This document shows positions 3,244-13,307 of a stretch of 64,000 nucleotides of DNA, piece after piece. The notes below the pieces were generated by a model that was not told where the DNA came from, made no database searches, and was given only the letters and a program-made list of their open reading frames with translations. Both the position numbers and the translations under genes were made by a program. Every line of letters starts with the position of its first letter. The stretch's first letter is position 1. The stretch lies in sequence record LR756500.1. The stretch is one strand, 5' to 3'.

Positions 3244-3314
3244 AGGGCCTAGAGGGATTCAAACCCCCGTAGTCAGCTTTGCAGGCTGCGACCTAATCAC
3301 TCGGACATAGGCCC
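3244..3314 (-). tRNA. trnC: tRNA-Cys(GCA)
   Basis: GGGCCTA/TAGGCCC acceptor stem, CT-GCA-AA anticodon loop, U73; D-loop and T-loop (TTTGAAT) slightly non-canonical. Confidence 0.82.
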
Positions 3315-5279: not shown

Positions 5280-6098
5280 TTAATATCTTATTGTAAATAA
5301 AGAATAATCTATTTTATAATCTTTATAATATTCTTTAAATATTGGTAAATTTTCTAATTTTAAATTATCTAAATTTTTAAATTCATTTTTTTCTATTAAT
5401 CTTAAATCTATATTATTATATTCTAATACTTTATTCATTTTATAAATATCTCTATCTTTCATCCAGCCTTTTACTTCGATATAAATGTTAAAGTCAGGTA
5501 AATAAAAATCTGATGTATAAAACCTATTATTTAAATATTTTAATCTTTTTCTTTCCCAATAGATATTATTACTAGTTAACCATTCTGCAACTTTCTTTTC
5601 CCAGGTCCCTTGTACTTTAATATTAAATTTACCATTAAATACTTCATACCATAAAGTATGATGATCACCGTTATTTTCTAAAAATTTTATTCTACCTCTA
5701 CTTATAGATTCTTTATGTTTTTCAGTTAATGATATACCTATTCTCCGTTTAGTTGCACCTATAGATAATTTATTTCTATATTCTTTAGCCTTTTCTTTTC
5801 CTAATGCTTCTTCTAAAGTTCTTCCCTTTCTCCAAATCCATCCGTTAGTTGTAATACATCTTTTAATAGGTTCTTTCCCATTTCTATGAATTAAACAAAA
5901 TGAAAAATGTCCATTTAATGATTGTGCTTTTTCAAACTCTTTACCACATTCACATATATAAATATTTTTATCAACTATAAAATACTTACTTTTTTTCTTA
6001 ATAGCCTTTAAAATTATATCAAACTTATCACATTTAAATCCATATGTTGATAATCCTCTTTGTGTTTTAAATTCTTTTCCACAATTACACTTAAACAT
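5280..6098 (-). CDS. Free-standing PD-(D/E)xK endonuclease with Zn-finger and NUMOD3-like DNA-binding repeats
   Basis: C.CGKEF repeats, EKHKESIS, QGTWE..VA.WL, YTSDFYLPD.NIYIEVKGW. Confidence 0.75.
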   Translation of the reverse strand: MFKCNCGKEFKTQRGLSTYGFKCDKFDIILKAIKKKSKYFIVDKNIYICECGKEFEKAQSLNGHFSFCLIHRNGKEPIKRCITTNGWIWRKGRTLEEALGKEKAKEYRNKLSIGATKRRIGISLTEKHKESISRGRIKFLENNGDHHTLWYEVFNGKFNIKVQGTWEKKVAEWLTSNNIYWERKRLKYLNNRFYTSDFYLPDFNIYIEVKGWMKDRDIYKMNKVLEYNNIDLRLIEKNEFKNLDNLKLENLPIFKEYYKDYKIDYSLFTIRY

Positions 6099-6160
6099 AA
6101 TGATATTTTTATTTTATATATCATTATATCTAGTCTAAACCAATTACCATTATGACCTTG

Positions 6161-6242
6161 TAACGAAGGAGAGATTCGAACTCTCACGCAATTAAGCATC
6201 AGTTCCTAAGACTGACGGGTCTTACCGTTCCCCCACTTCGTC
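6161..6242 (-). tRNA. trnL: tRNA-Leu(TAG)
   Basis: GACGAAG/CTTCGTT acceptor, TCAGT-CTTAGGA-ACTGA anticodon arm, long variable arm, GAGAG-TTCGAAT-CTCTC T arm, A73. Confidence 0.9.
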
Positions 6243-6250
6243 ATTTATAT

Positions 6251-6484
6251 TTAAAACATTATACGGTCATCATCGGGTTCATATCGTGATTTATCAAATA
6301 ATACATGTATTGGACTATTACCATCACTTTGTATTTTAACCGTATAACCGGTTTGCTCTTTAATTCTATTAAACATCTTTTCCATTGCAGCTGGCATATC
6401 TTTAGTTGCTATACCTTCTATTTGATCACCAAATGAAATAGGCTGAACATTTCTAACTATTGGAAAACTCCATTCAAAATCCAT
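6251..6484 (-). CDS. Hypothetical protein
   Basis: 77-aa ORF. Confidence 0.55.
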   Translation of the reverse strand: MDFEWSFPIVRNVQPISFGDQIEGIATKDMPAAMEKMFNRIKEQTGYTVKIQSDGNSPIHVLFDKSRYEPDDDRIMF

Positions 6485-6495
6485 AATTTTATTTT

Positions 6496-6861
6496 TTAAA
6501 TTGTATCAATTTCTGGTGAACCATCATTCATTGTTATAAAATAATAATCTCTCGCAAACATTAATGTACTTGGATCTTCAACCATTTTATTTATCTTTCT
6601 TACTGCATCGAGAATAATCTTTGGTACATTTGAAATTCTTTTATCATTAAAATTAATTACACTTATATTTGGATAATTCTTTTTAATATAATGTTTGTGT
6701 ATATCAGGATATGATAAACTTGAAAGATAATCTATATCCCATAGTTTACCTTGATTTTTTTCAGATAGACCTATAAGCTTTCCTGATCTCCATATTCCAA
6801 ATGCATTATTTCCTAAAATTAAAATACTTAAATAAACATTCTTTATATTATTTGAACTCAT
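6496..6861 (-). CDS. Hypothetical protein
   Basis: 121-aa ORF. Confidence 0.6.
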   Translation of the reverse strand: MSSNNIKNVYLSILILGNNAFGIWRSGKLIGLSEKNQGKLWDIDYLSSLSYPDIHKHYIKKNYPNISVINFNDKRISNVPKIILDAVRKINKMVEDPSTLMFARDYYFITMNDGSPEIDTI

Positions 6862-6865
6862 AATT

Positions 6866-7102
6866 TTATTTTTTAACTCTATAACATATTCCTTCTAAAA
6901 TATATTTATCTTCTTTATCTATTCTAATTTTAGGAGCAGGAAGATCTTCATATTTACTATAAATAGCTTCTAATACACCACCATCACATTTTTTATTTTT
7001 ACATTTAGGACCATTATAATTTCTTTCGAATGATGTCCACATTTCACTTCCACATTTACTGCATATAGCAGATAGTCCTATATCATATATTCTTCCACTC
7101 AT
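6866..7102 (-). CDS. Small Zn-ribbon protein
   Basis: CSKC...CKNKKC cysteine pairs. Confidence 0.55.
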   Translation of the reverse strand: MSGRIYDIGLSAICSKCGSEMWTSFERNYNGPKCKNKKCDGGVLEAIYSKYEDLPAPKIRIDKEDKYILEGICYRVKK

Positions 7103-7347
7103 GACTTACAAATACTTAGATTACTTTCAAATACAAATGAATTTTGTTCAATTGCTTTTCTAATATATCTCATAAAAAGAATCGCTTTATCTTCATTTGA
7201 AAAAGTTGCATCTCCAATATCTTGAATAGGTACTGGAAATAAATATTTTTTATTATCAACATTTACATTATAATATAAATGTCCTGCTCTATAATATGAA
7301 AAATAAACTTTATTGTCTTTTATAATTTCTTTTATATTTGGTAACAT
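7099..7347 (-). CDS. Conserved phage hypothetical protein
   Basis: YYRAGHLYY...FPVPI.DIGDATF...KAI.FMRYIRKA pattern. Confidence 0.65.
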   Translation of the reverse strand: MLPNIKEIIKDNKVYFSYYRAGHLYYNVNVDNKKYLFPVPIQDIGDATFSNEDKAILFMRYIRKAIEQNSFVFESNLSICKS

Positions 7348-7367
7348 AACTTTTTTTATTTAGTTTG

Positions 7368-7444
7368 TCCGCTAAGATGGATTTGAACCAGCATGTAACC
7401 AATTAACCTTTCAACCGGGTATCAGCCGGAGGGTATATTAGCGG
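7368..7444 (-). ncRNA. Rearranged tRNA-like RNA with GAT (Ile) anticodon loop and no D-arm at the normal position
   Basis: CCGCTAA/TTAGCGG acceptor + A73, GCTGG-TTCAAAT-CCATC T arm, CCGG-CTGATAC-CCGG anticodon arm only 8 nt after the acceptor strand. Confidence 0.65.
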
Positions 7445-7455
7445 TTTATAATTTG

Positions 7456-7526
7456 CAGATCTACAAAGATTCGAACTCTGAAAGACGGGTCTGGAATCCG
7501 TCGTGTTACCATTACACTATAGACCT
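7456..7526 (-). tRNA. trnW: tRNA-Trp(CCA)
   Basis: AGGTCTA/TAGATCT acceptor, GTGT-AATGGTA-ACAC D arm, TT-CCA-GA loop, TTCGAAT T loop, G73. Confidence 0.9.
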
Positions 7527-7537
7527 ATTTAAATTCG

Positions 7538-7613
7538 TGGGAACTGAGAGATTTGAACTCCCGGCCTTAATTTTGTAAGAATTCTGCTCTAAACCAAACT
7601 GAGCTAAGCTCCC
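7538..7613 (-). tRNA. trnV: tRNA-Val(TAC)
   Basis: GGGAGCT/AGTTCCC acceptor, GCTC/GAGC D stem, CT-TAC-AA loop, A73. Confidence 0.92.
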
Positions 7614-7632
7614 ATTTACACCTAAACTTTTG

Positions 7633-7716
7633 TACTACGTATGGGATTCGAACCCATGAGTTGTTTCCAACACAACAGTGAAAGTGTTGCGACCTAAACC
7701 TCTAGTCGAACGTAGC
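7633..7716 (-). tRNA. trnE: tRNA-Glu(TTC) with long variable arm
   Basis: GCTACGT/ACGTAGT acceptor, CAACA-CTTTCAC-TGTTG anticodon arm, extra GTTG-GAAA-CAAC hairpin, ATGGG-TTCGAAT-CCCAT T arm. Confidence 0.88.
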
Positions 7717-7738
7717 ATTTAAATTTGGGTGGAAGATG

Positions 7739-7822
7739 GGTACCTGATAGGATTCGAACCTACGATGTTTCTAATGTATAGAGCCACAATCTATTGCCTT
7801 CGGCCGCTAGGCTACAGATACC
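7739..7822 (-). tRNA. trnH: tRNA-His(GTG) with encoded G-1 and 14-nt variable region
   Basis: G-1:C73 pair, GTATCTG/CAGGTAC acceptor, ATAGA-TTGTGGC-TCTAT anticodon arm. Confidence 0.9.
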
Positions 7823-7840
7823 ATATTAAATATTTCAAAG

Positions 7841-7880
7841 AACAAAATAAAAAGGTTCAAATCTTGCGATTTGAACCTTT
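7841..7880 (-). terminator. Intrinsic terminator directly upstream of the tRNA array
   Basis: Perfect 13-bp stem AAAGGTTCAAATC/GATTTGAACCTTT (7851-7880), GCAA loop, followed on the minus strand by a T-rich tract. Confidence 0.85.
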
Positions 7881-7910
7881 AAATATAGAATTATATAGTT
7901 AATGCACAAA

Positions 7911-7985
7911 TCACATAATATTAATGTTCACCTCTTCTAGAAGATGTTCCCAAATATGAATGATATGTACAGAAATTGCTTTCAT
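7911..7985 (-). CDS. 24-aa leader peptide MKAISVHIIHIWEHLLEEVNINIM (putative attenuator)
   Basis: Short ORF between promoter motifs (7990-7997, 8020-8042) and the terminator; codons 6-19 all match tRNA species encoded downstream. Confidence 0.65.
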   Translation of the reverse strand: MKAISVHIIHIWEHLLEEVNINIM

Positions 7986-8019
7986 TTGTTTATATATTAA
8001 AATTTTATTTGTAATTATA

Positions 8020-8042
8020 TGCAAATATATATAAAAAGTTTC
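8020..8042 (-). promoter_or_regulatory. Early-type promoter AAAC-N8-TATATTTGCA for the leader/tRNA unit
   Basis: GAAACTTTTTATATATATTTGCA on the minus strand. Confidence 0.6.
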
Positions 8043-8070
8043 GCATTTACAAATTTATTTTAAATTATTT

Positions 8071-9135
8071 TTAACTTATTTTATTTTGAAGTTCTTGTAT
8101 ACCTTTTTTATCTTTAATTTTATTACCAATATATTCAAATTGTCCTCTCCATTCATCACTTGAACTGTATGATTCTTTTTCTGTAAGAATTTTTTTATGT
8201 TGTAAATAAATTAAAATCGCATCTGCTAATTCAAAAAGTTGTTGATATTTTAATTTGCCTTTGTATTTTCCGATAAATTGATTAGTTTTAACATTATTGT
8301 ATTTTGTATTACCATTAAGTATTTTAGCAATTGAAGTACTACTATGTGAAGAAGGCAATTCATATATAAGTGTAAGTATATCATTTATGATTTCTTTTTC
8401 ATTAATTGAAAGTTCCGTTTTATCAAAAATATATAATGATAGAAATTTTTGATAATTATTCCATGAATCATTGGAATGATTATATACCGTATTCAAATCA
8501 TAATTATCATAAGTATCAATTTTATTTAAATCAAACGATTCATAACATTGTTCTTTAATAAAAAATATTTTATCAATTTCGTCTTGTGTATGAATTTGTG
8601 TATGTGGTAAGTGTAGTCTATATAACATAGCATTAGTATCTAAGTTATTATCCTTTTGGAATTTTGCCCAAAAATCATAAAAATCTTGTTCCTTTTTAAT
8701 GTAATAATTTACGCTATCATCATAATGATATTTATAACCAGAACCATTAGGATTGTTTATATCTAATTTATATTTTGTTATGCTTGCTATAGCATCAGGG
8801 TTATCTAAAAAATGAGCTCTTGATATTTTATAAAAATCTATTCTATTGAAATCATACGTATGTCCAGGTGACCATGTTATTAATTCAATATTATTTTTCC
8901 AGAAAAATTGTAATCTTGCTGCTAATTTTCTTTTTTGTAAAGTTTCATATAAATTATTATCGAATTTAAAAAGATGTAATGGAACTTCTTTTCCATATTT
9001 ATCTAAAACTATAATAAGTGGAATTTTATTGTGTATAAATATTTTAGAAATTTTATACATTTGATCTCTATGAAAATATAAAGATTGTTGTGATGCTTTT
9101 AAGCTATCACCAGGCATAAGATATTCTCTATTCAT
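8071..9135 (-). CDS. Hypothetical protein
   Basis: 354-aa ORF; no motif recognised with confidence. Confidence 0.75.
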   Translation of the reverse strand: MNREYLMPGDSLKASQQSLYFHRDQMYKISKIFIHNKIPLIIVLDKYGKEVPLHLFKFDNNLYETLQKRKLAARLQFFWKNNIELITWSPGHTYDFNRIDFYKISRAHFLDNPDAIASITKYKLDINNPNGSGYKYHYDDSVNYYIKKEQDFYDFWAKFQKDNNLDTNAMLYRLHLPHTQIHTQDEIDKIFFIKEQCYESFDLNKIDTYDNYDLNTVYNHSNDSWNNYQKFLSLYIFDKTELSINEKEIINDILTLIYELPSSHSSTSIAKILNGNTKYNNVKTNQFIGKYKGKLKYQQLFELADAILIYLQHKKILTEKESYSSSDEWRGQFEYIGNKIKDKKGIQELQNKIS

Positions 9136-9149
9136 TTAATAAAATATAA

Positions 9150-9189
9150 AAAAAGAACATAACTATATTAACTATATTATGTTCTTTTT
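9150..9189. terminator. Bidirectional-looking intrinsic terminator
   Basis: AAAAAGAACATAA / TTATGTTCTTTTT inverted repeat between ORFs. Confidence 0.6.
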
Positions 9190-9203
9190 AATTAATAAAA
9201 ATA

Positions 9204-9482
9204 TTATTTACTTTCATCAAAATATTCTTTATGAATTTTTTTCTGAAGCTCAATAGAAGCTTTAACTTCTTCAATTTCTTTGTGAATTTCTCTTATTGAA
9301 GCGAAATTTAGAGTTTGATGTTGAAATGCAGTGTTTAAAGCTCTTTTCTTAATAACAATTTCTTGTTCTAAAGAAGATACTTCTTTGTTTGATGCTGCAA
9401 TAGCTTCTTCTAATCTTAGAGAAGCATCTTGATTTGCTGTTTCTTTATCGTCAGCGCTGATTAGTTTAAGGTACTTGTTCAT
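9204..9482 (-). CDS. Coiled-coil hypothetical protein
   Basis: 92-aa ORF with heptad character. Confidence 0.6.
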   Translation of the reverse strand: MNKYLKLISADDKETANQDASLRLEEAIAASNKEVSSLEQEIVIKKRALNTAFQHQTLNFASIREIHKEIEEVKASIELQKKIHKEYFDESK

Positions 9483-9490
9483 AATAATAA

Positions 9491-10750
9491 TTATTTGGTT
9501 AATAAATTAAAAAATATATCAATTAAATGTTTTTCAAATTTTAAAGTTTTTTGTTTTGCATCACTTCTTATTAATTCTTGTTCTTTTATAAGAAGTTTGA
9601 AAAATTCCGTTTTTCTTAAATCAAATGCTTGTTCAGAAAGATAAATAGTTCTTTTAATATTATGAGATAGCAGCCCATTGTTATTAATTAAACCTTTAAT
9701 AGAAGCATTTAAGAAATATCCCTTTTTAGCTAGAAATAATCTAGCTTTTTCTACTTCATTTAGTTCTTTAGGTAAAAGTTCTCTTTCTTCACAACCTTCC
9801 GAGTTTTCAGCTAATCTACCTGCAACATGATTTATTCCACTAATTGTTTTAATGTTTTCAACCATTCCTTTAGGTAAAGATATAACTTCCTTTTTTGTTG
9901 ATTTAATAGATACCTTATAAGTATCTTTAAATTCAGATTCAACTATTCTTTTATTGCTTAAAACTTTTTTCCAAGAATCATTATAAGTATAAGCTCCAAA
10001 CCAATCCCATCTAAGATTTGCTTCATAAGTTTTTTCGATTTCATTACATACAGTAATTACTAAATCTTCTGGAAGAGATCCCGCAATTATTCTCACTATC
10101 TTATCATCCATATCCCAAGTATCTTTTACAATACGAGATTCATTTATTTTAAGATTATCTATATCATAATGAAAAATAGATGGAGCATTATATTCATAGC
10201 ATTTAATTCCTTTTCTGTAAATAATTAATTTATCTCCTCCTTTAAAAAGTTTAAATCCATTTCCTGTATATAATAAATCTTTTCGTTCAAATGAAAAATA
10301 ATAATCCCATTTATTAATAACTTCTTTTATAGATGGAATGATATCAATAAAAATACAAGTCTTATTATCTTCAGAATTAACTTCTTCAACAATTTCCCAT
10401 ATAGGATTTTCTTCATCTAAAGCATTACAATAAATTTCACGTATTACCATCCAAGGTTCCCATATAGTACCTCCCATATCAACACAAAAAGAAGTTTCTT
10501 TTCCATCTATAACAATAAATTCTGCATCTTCACCTCTAAATTTATGTGATGTTATACTAAAAAGTATTTCTCTATGACCAGAAAATGCATGAAATTTTAT
10601 TTTATTTCTCATTAACCAAGCAATAGCATAATTAAGACCACTTCCATATTCTCCTATTTTAGTGTCATCATTTTTCTTAGTAGAAAATCCTATTTTTTCA
10701 AAAGCTTTAGGTTCTATTTTACCTTTATTTGAAATTTTTAAGAATGCCAT
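9491..10750 (-). CDS. GHKL (HATPase_c)-family ATPase domain protein
   Basis: ISNKG.I...AF..IG.STK......IG.YGSGL.YA motifs; later W....REIYCNALDE. Confidence 0.75.
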   Translation of the reverse strand: MAFLKISNKGKIEPKAFEKIGFSTKKNDDTKIGEYGSGLNYAIAWLMRNKIKFHAFSGHREILFSITSHKFRGEDAEFIVIDGKETSFCVDMGGTIWEPWMVIREIYCNALDEENPIWEIVEEVNSEDNKTCIFIDIIPSIKEVINKWDYYFSFERKDLLYTGNGFKLFKGGDKLIIYRKGIKCYEYNAPSIFHYDIDNLKINESRIVKDTWDMDDKIVRIIAGSLPEDLVITVCNEIEKTYEANLRWDWFGAYTYNDSWKKVLSNKRIVESEFKDTYKVSIKSTKKEVISLPKGMVENIKTISGINHVAGRLAENSEGCEERELLPKELNEVEKARLFLAKKGYFLNASIKGLINNNGLLSHNIKRTIYLSEQAFDLRKTEFFKLLIKEQELIRSDAKQKTLKFEKHLIDIFFNLLTK

Positions 10751-12303: not shown

Positions 12304-13273
12304 TGTTAAATATTCTCACTTTGTTGATTAAGTTGTTAAGGCTTTTAATCTAATTTTTCTCCACATGTTGGACAAAATTTCCATGTCGATTTTTTAATTC
12401 TTGATCTACATTCTGGACAATATTGTCTATTATCAGTTGGAAAAATAACAGTTTTTTGAGATTCAGGAAGAATCTTATATTCAACAAATGATGAACAATA
12501 AGAATTAAATTCAATATCTATTTGATCAAAATATTGACTTGAAGTTTTACCTTTAGATATTCTACCAGTTTCTTTTGTCGCAGACATTTTAGAACATTTA
12601 ACTGATCTTTTATTTTCATTTAAAAATCCTTTAGTTTGTTCTTGATTAGAATTTACATTAATATTGATATCTAAGCTATCTGTTGTAGTAGAATATTGTC
12701 CACTAGTATTTGTAACTCCTGTTGAATAAAAACATGTATTAATATTTTGAGTTCCATTTGTATACGTACCAGGAAACCAATAATCTTTGTCAAAAGATAA
12801 TGTTAAATTTTGATTTTTAACTTTTTCATCATAAAATTCTATACGTAAAATACCATTTTTTGCAATAGCATGATTAGTTGATTGATTATTTTCAACTTCA
12901 TACGTTTCAAAAAGAAATTTACGATTCTGATCTAAATATCTATCTAACCAAACTCGTTCACCTGGTTTTAAAACAAGTAAATTCTTTGACATAGAATTAC
13001 CATTAAAGATAATTTTAATACCGATAGTATTTTGTTTTGGATTATAGAGTTCTAATTCAAACTCATCTTTGTCTCTTAAAAAGACATTATTATCGTTTGC
13101 CTGGGAACGATAAACCCTTTGTCTGTTTTTGCCTATGGCCACGTGAGCCTCTGGCGTTCCATAAAATAATTGTACCATTTTTAATCTCTATTTTTATTTT
13201 TGCTAATTTTTTTGTCGCTCTTAAACGACTCTAAGCTTATTAAACTCAAAACTAACAAAGTGAGACCTTAACA
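12304..13273. repeat. Inverted repeat flanking gene 12345-13178 (12 bp perfect + 6 bp)
   Basis: TCTCACTTTGTT at 12314-12325 and AACAAAGTGAGA at 13254-13265; TGTTAA (12304-12309) and TTAACA (13268-13273). Confidence 0.6.
12345..13178 (-). CDS. Conserved phage protein with C-terminal Zn ribbon
   Basis: EFELELYNP...LVLKPGERVWLDRYLD; C-terminal YCPEC...FCPTCG. Confidence 0.75.
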   Translation of the reverse strand: MVQLFYGTPEAHVAIGKNRQRVYRSQANDNNVFLRDKDEFELELYNPKQNTIGIKIIFNGNSMSKNLLVLKPGERVWLDRYLDQNRKFLFETYEVENNQSTNHAIAKNGILRIEFYDEKVKNQNLTLSFDKDYWFPGTYTNGTQNINTCFYSTGVTNTSGQYSTTTDSLDININVNSNQEQTKGFLNENKRSVKCSKMSATKETGRISKGKTSSQYFDQIDIEFNSYCSSFVEYKILPESQKTVIFPTDNRQYCPECRSRIKKSTWKFCPTCGEKLD

Positions 13274-13307
13274 TTAATTATATGAAAATAAAATTAAAAG
13301 TTTCGAT

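Follow-up and report, generated by a model that had tools for sequence, protein, structure and literature searches.

How a phage adjusts the output of its own tRNA genes is the question raised by a locus on the minus strand of LR756500.1, an unannotated 462,018-bp genome (24% G+C) of an uncultured phage, where a tiny ORF written in the codons that the tRNAs behind it read is followed by a transcription stop signal. The window analysed here is the whole 64,000-nucleotide stretch corresponding to positions 111001-175000 of that record, and all coordinates refer to the window unless stated otherwise. An initial annotation made from the sequence alone had proposed that this ORF is the leader peptide of an attenuator whose codons match the tRNA array that it controls. 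Our analysis confirmed the observation and supports the core of this interpretation, although the evidence is entirely computational and translation of the ORF, the response of read-through to tRNA supply and the participation of anticodon nucleases are not supported by any data here.

Organization of the leader and tRNA block

The elements follow the end of a 354-codon gene (stop at 8071), and every feature listed in the initial annotation was present at its place. Reading along the minus strand, they are:

8043-8014, minus strand: conserved promoter-like motif, CGAAAC (8043-8038), an 18-nt spacer and TATAAT (8019-8014)
7985-7911, minus strand: leader ORF of 24 codons plus TGA (MKAISVHIIHIWEHLLEEVNINIM)
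7970-7929, minus strand: codons 6-19 of the leader, the proposed regulatory run
7915-7903, minus strand: region 2, the predicted 5' strand of the antiterminator, spanning the last sense codon and the TGA stop
7880-7851, minus strand: intrinsic terminator hairpin with a 13-bp stem and a GCAA loop, followed by a T-tract at 7850-7841
7843-7833, minus strand: GTTCTTTGAAA motif of unknown role
7821-7738, minus strand: tRNA-His(GTG), 84 nt
7716-7632, minus strand: tRNA-Glu(TTC), 85 nt
7613-7537, minus strand: tRNA-Val(TAC)
7526-7455, minus strand: tRNA-Trp(CCA)
7444-7368, minus strand: Ile(GAU) tRNA-like gene with no D arm and a long variable region
7347-6251, minus strand: four small protein genes, probably in the same transcription unit
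6242-6160, minus strand: tRNA-Leu(TAG)

The initial annotation had placed two promoter boxes at 8020-8042 and 7990-7997, but the conserved element is the CGAAAC/TATAAT motif given above and the second box is not conserved among the paralogous copies. The ATG at 7985 lies about 22 nt downstream of the inferred start site. The region holds 3 terminator-like sites against 0.8 expected from shuffles. ARAGORN and Rfam both called the His, Glu, Val, Trp and Leu tRNAs, whereas the Ile-like gene was not called by ARAGORN and scored 22.5 bits with the Rfam tRNA model, below the 29-bit cut-off; its acceptor, anticodon arm (loop CUGAUAC) and T arm are good, but the D arm is missing and there is an 18-nt insert. 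Additionally, a tRNA-Cys(GCA) at 3314-3244, missed by ARAGORN, lies further down the same strand and has no codon in the leader. Although a tRNA with a CTA anticodon is present, reading TAG or TGA as sense barely changed the coverage of long ORFs, so table 11 stands and the TGA of the leader is taken as a stop. Pfam and PHROGs gave no function for the small proteins after the array, the first of which (7347-7099) belongs to phrog_20427, a family that recurs inside tRNA regions of huge phages.

Codon content of the leader

Codons 6-19 are an unbroken run of V, H, I, W, E and L, every one of them read by a tRNA, or by the Ile tRNA-like gene, of the block downstream, and 17 of the 24 codons of the ORF belong to that set. 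However, six of these 17 matches rest on the non-canonical Ile tRNA-like gene, which may not be functional. We counted only the five canonical tRNAs with strict wobble, and on that basis 10 of the 23 codons after the start are cognate against a genomic frequency of 12% (binomial p of 2e-4; empirical p of 0.007 against all 1776 ATG-ORFs of 18-28 codons in the genome), a figure that becomes 16 of 23 when the Ile-like gene is added. All five canonical tRNA species are represented, which a random leader achieves with p 0.0018. The synonymous choices also fit the anticodons, as the initial annotation had noted: ATA makes up 47.5% of Ile codons in long ORFs, yet none of the six Ile codons of the leader is ATA, and TTA is 76% of Leu codons, yet the two Leu codons of the leader are CTT and CTA.

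One case chosen by eye cannot carry this claim, and coincidence, with the hairpin being an ordinary terminator or insulator after the 354-codon gene and the ORF a chance reading frame in AT-rich spacer, had to be considered. In this regard, off-frame short ORFs in this AT-rich genome have skewed compositions, Ile, Leu and Glu are common residues here, and the leader ranked only 10th of 2494 in a crude genome-wide ranking of short ORFs starting at the first ATG after a stop. This ranking was a poor test, since two of the real leaders are hidden by upstream in-frame ATGs, and it was replaced by the empirical null of all ATG-ORFs. The replication described below strongly disfavours coincidence, which we regard as very improbable.

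Sister modules in the same genome

If the interpretation is right, other tRNA blocks should carry their own matched leaders. The genome has 26 tRNA genes and a tmRNA gene, all on this strand between 61 and 119 kb of LR756500.1, with five to seven of the tRNAs in the window. The CGAAAC/TATAAT motif, with a spacer of 17-18 nt, occurs only eight times in the 462 kb, always on this strand, and the promoter region of the window's module is about 80% identical to the other copies over about 80 nt. Four copies, including that of the window, are followed by an ORF of 20-24 codons, a terminator and a tRNA or tmRNA block; the three sister modules (ORFs of 20-23 codons) precede the tmRNA (around 45104 of the locus labelled L002), tRNA-Asn (L002, around 37496) and tRNA-Ala (L002, around 15819). 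A fifth copy heads an 83-codon ORF ending just before tRNA-Ser, and a sixth directly precedes an interrupted tRNA-like gene. The three sister modules were picked by architecture and not by composition. The numbers of codons of each leader that are cognate to each block were:

His-block leader: His block 10, tmRNA block 2, Asn block 3, Ala block 1
tmRNA-block leader: His block 1, tmRNA block 6, Asn block 4, Ala block 4
Asn-block leader: His block 1, tmRNA block 0, Asn block 10, Ala block 2
Ala-block leader: His block 0, tmRNA block 1, Asn block 0, Ala block 15

The diagonal is the best of all 24 possible assignments. The match is individually significant for the Asn and Ala leaders (empirical p of 0.0011 and 0.0006) and not for the tmRNA leader (p 0.18), and Fisher's combination of the three gives 1.7e-5. 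Furthermore, the Ala-block leader (MKTLSTYPLGQAQTLGTPPITG) holds at least one codon for each of the eight tRNAs in the 4.2 kb behind it, with a probability of 0.0005 for a random leader. The discrimination extends to the level of codons: Leu is CTT/CTA in the His-block leader, whose block holds Leu(TAG), whereas the Ala-block leader uses TTA three times and its block holds Leu(TAA), and the Asn-block leader uses AGA twice and its block holds Arg(TCT).

These data also bear on the possibility that the short ORFs are free-standing micropeptide genes, or that the promoter-to-terminator units are small RNAs, with the tRNAs transcribed from their own promoters and the terminator simply ending the small gene. 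Each unit has its own strong promoter and terminator, a second promoter-like sequence lies between the terminator and the first tRNA or tmRNA in the tmRNA and Asn modules, and attenuator RNAs are known to act in trans elsewhere (rnTrpL, PMC6614838). Nevertheless, the four peptides share no sequence, only their match to the local tRNA set, and a micropeptide model predicts neither codon-level choices such as CTN against TTA nor a copy of the terminator's 3' arm at the stop codon. In addition, only 29 nt separate the terminator from tRNA-His in the window's module, leaving little room for a promoter. We consider this alternative unlikely, although the tRNAs may also be expressed independently, as suggested by the second promoter-like sequences and by the unexplained GTTCTTTGAAA motif, which recurs 16-36 nt upstream of the first tRNA or tmRNA of the sister blocks.

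Predicted antiterminator

The initial annotation had proposed that GUGAUUUG, spanning the leader stop codon, pairs with CAAAUCGC in the terminator 5' arm and loop to form an antiterminator. This pairing is real and extends to 9 bp plus 2 further pairs across a 1-nt mismatch (-12.3 kcal/mol, against -6.5 +/- 1.6 for dinucleotide shuffles; p 0.004). In all four modules the strongest partner of the terminator's 5' arm, anywhere between the ATG and the terminator, lies at or just before the leader stop, with energies of -12.3, -14.7, -7.1 and -11.2 kcal/mol and shuffle p values of 0.004, 0.004, 0.14 and 0.02 for the His, tmRNA, Asn and Ala modules, respectively. In the tmRNA module a perfect 10-nt copy of the terminator's 3' arm starts at the stop codon.

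To further investigate this, the nascent RNA up to the terminator loop was folded with a ribosome footprint moved codon by codon. In all four modules the antiterminator formed for A-site positions up to about codon 17-20 and was lost at the last codons and the stop, and in the window's module it formed for A-site codons 2-23 and was lost at codon 24 and the stop. This also explains why non-cognate residues cluster at the two ends of each leader. By contrast, equilibrium folding of the full transcript kept the terminator whatever the ribosome position, except for one mid-leader position in the Ala module, so that the switch otherwise appears only when the 3' arm is withheld, which is a modelling assumption, and, as in classical attenuators, would have to be kinetic. 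Untranslated nascent RNA also formed the antiterminator. Although the full-length minimum-energy fold of the window's module pairs codons 6-10 with region 2, no clear anti-antiterminator was seen in these folds, and the default state of untranslated RNA looks like read-through, with termination requiring a ribosome that finishes the leader in time.

Matched leaders in other phages

An identical copy of the region lies on a 429-kb groundwater metagenome contig. Apart from this identical contig of the same phage, searches through the upstream 354-codon gene found only 40%-identical homologues on short contigs with no tRNA array next to them, and an exact pattern from the T arm of tRNA-His gave no hit in IMG/VR, so there are no covariation data for this exact module. 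We used homologues of the phrog_20427 protein as an arbitrary sample of phage tRNA arrays. Matched ORFs were found in at least five unrelated phage contigs, mostly with the full layout, as in the following loci:

L041, 2681-2758: regulatory run LLLKLEQLEKHEK; downstream tRNAs His, Glu, Lys, Lys, Glu, Leu, Leu, Lys
L019, 1553-1648: regulatory run rich in R, Q, I, D, V; downstream tRNAs Gln, Gln, Asp, Arg, Val, Ile, Asp, Arg, Arg
L035, 2331-2438: regulatory run AAEHTFAEAFTAPAEP; downstream tRNAs His, His, Phe, Pro, Phe, Glu, Gln, Glu, Ala, Tyr, Pro, Thr
L012, 1931-2035: regulatory run ISVISSIKRHWSFK; downstream tRNAs Trp, His, Phe, Ile, Lys, Arg, Ser, Val

Each of these modules also has a terminator, and a copy of its 3' arm lies a few codons after the regulatory run. 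The antiterminator segment lies in the last codons of the leader, at the stop codon in the window's genome and 3-10 codons before it in the longer foreign leaders. Further blocks of the same contigs carry their own different leaders, for example one rich in T, Q, G, A and P before Gly, Pro, Ala, Gln, Pro, Gly, Thr (corrected p 5e-10). These contigs range from 22 to 41% G+C and some have consensus sigma-70 promoters and Shine-Dalgarno sites, so the design is not tied to one host group. A terminator-anchored scan of 79 metagenome loci gave only 7 heads and one clear case, and was replaced by a scan of 86 array heads that did not require a terminator, in which 5 reached a corrected p below 0.001, against 0.35% in controls scored with another locus's tRNA set. 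In addition, two homologous leaders (from loci L095 and L101, 85% identical DNA) differ at nine residues; three of these changes are within the cognate set and most of the others move a residue into or out of it, whereas region 2 is conserved and one G:C pair is lost from both arms of the terminator.

Among cultured phages, Xanthomonas phage XacN1 has two strongly matched short ORFs inside its tRNA arrays (p 4e-6 and 1e-5 among 29 tested), each followed by a hairpin without a U-tract, while phage T5 and Cronobacter phage GAP32 showed no convincing matched leaders. The XacN1 case raises the possibility that the matched ORF senses decoding speed but acts on something other than intrinsic termination, such as Rho access, RNase processing of the tRNA precursor or transcript stability, the hairpin being mainly a processing or insulating element. 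In the window's genome, the 83-codon ORF that ends in a Ser-rich tail 8 nt before tRNA-Ser, with no terminator, and the unexplained GTTCTTTGAAA motif between terminator and tRNA point in the same direction. However, all four modules of this genome have canonical hairpin plus T-tract terminators whose 5' arm has its best partner at or just before the leader stop, the specific signature of termination/antitermination, and this alternative seems improbable to us.

Proposed model and relation to known systems

We consider it likely that this is a ribosome-mediated transcription attenuator that sets the output of a phage tRNA operon according to how fast the codons served by that operon are decoded, with translation of the leader, its coupling to transcription in an unknown host, the kinetic switch and the physiological trigger being inferred. 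In this model, transcription starts at the CGAAAC/TATAAT promoter and a ribosome loads on the leader while RNA polymerase moves towards the terminator, about 30 nt past the stop codon. If His, Glu, Val, Trp, Ile and Leu(CUN) codons are read quickly, the ribosome reaches the last codons or the TGA and covers region 2, the terminator hairpin forms and the transcript ends before tRNA-His. If any of these codons is read slowly, the ribosome stays in codons 6-19, region 2 remains free and pairs with the terminator's 5' arm, and polymerase reads through into the tRNA genes. The new tRNAs would speed up the leader, closing a negative feedback loop, and each of the four leader-headed tRNA or tmRNA blocks would have its own leader tuned to its own set, although the tmRNA-block leader matches only weakly.

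The closest parallel is probably with the multivalent leader-peptide attenuators of enterobacterial amino-acid operons (ilvGMEDA, with Leu/Val/Ile codons, thr, with Thr/Ile codons, and his, trp, leu and pheA), where a short ORF enriched in regulatory codons precedes an intrinsic terminator and a mutually exclusive antiterminator whose 5' strand is covered by a ribosome that finishes the leader. The phage modules differ in that their cargo is tRNA and tmRNA genes and not biosynthetic enzymes, in that the output acts directly on the signal, in that up to seven amino acids and eight anticodons are sensed by one leader, in the choice of synonymous codons to fit the anticodons, in the absence of a clear 1:2 anti-antiterminator in our folds and in being encoded by a phage and repeated once per tRNA block. 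The E. coli pheST attenuator, with its Phe-rich pheM leader, would likewise apply leader-peptide attenuation to a component of the translation apparatus and report on charged tRNA supply, but with a single amino acid, a protein cargo and a cellular origin. T-box riboswitches also couple tRNA status to read-through of a terminator ahead of translation-related genes, but they bind uncharged tRNA directly and need no ribosome, and an Rfam scan of 5500-9500 at E up to 1 returned only tRNAs and two sub-threshold unrelated hits, with no T-box or any other cis-regulator. The cysteine-responsive short-ORF attenuators of mycobacteria (bioRxiv 10.1101/834739) also act through ribosome stalling on short ORFs rich in one codon type, but they sense a single amino acid, are leaderless mRNAs, carry a cellular metabolic cargo and have no tRNA genes downstream.

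Phage tRNAs have been described as codon supplements and as replacements for host tRNAs cut by defence nucleases (PMC10264068; PARIS, PMC11464382), which explains why a phage would keep particular tRNA species topped up during infection. In the literature that we searched, those works treat which tRNAs phages carry and not how their expression is controlled, and no leader ORF or attenuator controlling phage tRNA genes was found, although older work cannot be excluded. The initial annotation had linked the switch to anticodon nucleases, which is plausible since phage tRNAs do rescue infection from such systems, but this link is speculation, and codon-usage mismatch with the host, host shut-off or amino-acid limitation are also candidate triggers. 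It seems more probable than not that huge phages of very different hosts regulate their tRNA and tmRNA supply with a previously unrecognised class of such multivalent attenuators, each block having one leader written in the codons of its own anticodons, the phage thereby sensing a shortfall of any of up to eight tRNA species and replacing just that set.

Phage tRNA genes have been debated for fifty years in terms of which tRNAs are carried, and a demand-sensing attenuator would show that tRNA supply is actively balanced during infection, extend leader-peptide attenuation from amino-acid biosynthesis to the decoding machinery itself and make the connection to tRNA-targeting defence systems experimentally approachable. 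The leaders would also be compact natural sensors for many tRNAs at once and possible parts for synthetic biology. Lastly, leader composition would predict which tRNAs and interspersed genes belong to one transcription unit and suggest which odd tRNA-like genes are functional; here, the six ATT/ATC codons argue that the D-arm-less Ile gene is used.

Further promoter copies and motifs

In addition to the copies that precede a leader and a terminator, the CGAAAC/TATAAT promoter was found in other contexts, and a second motif recurs close to the first tRNA or tmRNA of each block:

L003:295-589 (L003 being a piece of the phage genome record), minus strand, genome 100295-100589, outside the window: fifth copy of the promoter, with an 83-codon ORF.
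Window 13260-13305, minus strand, genome 124305: another copy of the promoter, within the window.
Window 7833-7843 and genome 94937, 87361, 87304, 65675, 108534 and 108341: motif GTTCTTTGAAA and its variants.
Window 7868-7880: 5' arm of the terminator.

The fifth copy of the promoter drives an 83-codon ORF in which nine of the last 17 codons are Ser (AGT, TCA, TCG, TCT), and its stop lies 8 nt before tRNA-Ser(GCT), which is followed by tRNA-Ser(TGA), with no terminator. This may be a terminator-less variant of the same sensing idea. In contrast, the copy at window 13260-13305 is followed by a 17-codon ORF and then by a protein gene, with no terminator or tRNA, and it is probably an ordinary promoter of this class. 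Additionally, the motif GTTCTTTGAAA, with variants GTTCATTGAAA, GTTCTTTGGAA and GTTCTTTGACA, sits 16-36 nt upstream of the first tRNA or tmRNA of each block and also lies just after two promoter copies; it could be a start-site region, a processing site or a protein-binding site. Furthermore, the 5' arm of the terminator contains GGTTCAAATC, the same string as the T arm of the neighbouring Ile tRNA-like gene, and the terminator might derive from a tRNA remnant.

tRNA genes, tRNA-like genes and the tmRNA

The following concern tRNA, tRNA-like and tmRNA genes of this phage, both in the window and in the rest of the genome:

Window 7738-7821: tRNA-His, 84 nt.
Window 7632-7716: tRNA-Glu, 85 nt.
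Window 3244-3314, minus strand: tRNA-Cys(GCA).
Genome about 108390-108510, 107975-108115, 86264 and 64423 (L003 and L002, the latter another piece of the same record), minus strand, outside the window: interrupted tRNA-like genes.
Near genome 110800-110990: apparently split tRNA.
Genome 110652-110720 (L003, just outside the window): tRNA with a CTA anticodon.
Genome 94511-94921 (L002:44511-44921): tmRNA.

tRNA-His and tRNA-Glu apparently have long variable regions, which is unusual for these two acceptors, whereas tRNA-Cys(GCA) was found by Rfam (46.6 bits) but missed by ARAGORN, and it has no codon in the leader. Several tRNA-like genes outside the window have perfect 7-bp acceptor stems and good T arms, but they are interrupted after the 5' acceptor strand by inserts of about 55-70 nt that share the motif CTCAAAGTYATTACAGAAAAA, and a further apparently split tRNA lies just upstream of the CTA-anticodon tRNA. 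These may be an unusual tRNA intron or insertion element. Although the tRNA with a CTA anticodon is of the TAG suppressor type, treating TAG as sense adds almost nothing to long-ORF coverage anywhere in the genome. Lastly, the phage encodes a tmRNA (tag GNNAEMRMAA), which sits behind its own leader-terminator module and a second promoter-like sequence.

Proteins encoded close to the tRNA genes

Two protein genes of the window that lie close to tRNA genes matched phage protein families:

Window 7099-7347, minus strand: 82-residue protein, phrog_20427, function unknown.
Window 5280-6098, minus strand: 272-residue protein, just downstream of tRNA-Leu(TAG).

The 82-residue protein has homologues embedded in or near tRNA regions of many huge phages, including cultured ones (XacN1, RsoM2USA, GAP32, CBB, Serratia phage BF and Yersinia fHe-Yen9), and it may have a tRNA-related role. 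In addition, the 272-residue protein matches phage endonuclease and Holliday-junction-resolvase families (phrog_9019, 1e-13), which recalls the homing endonucleases found in other phage tRNA regions.
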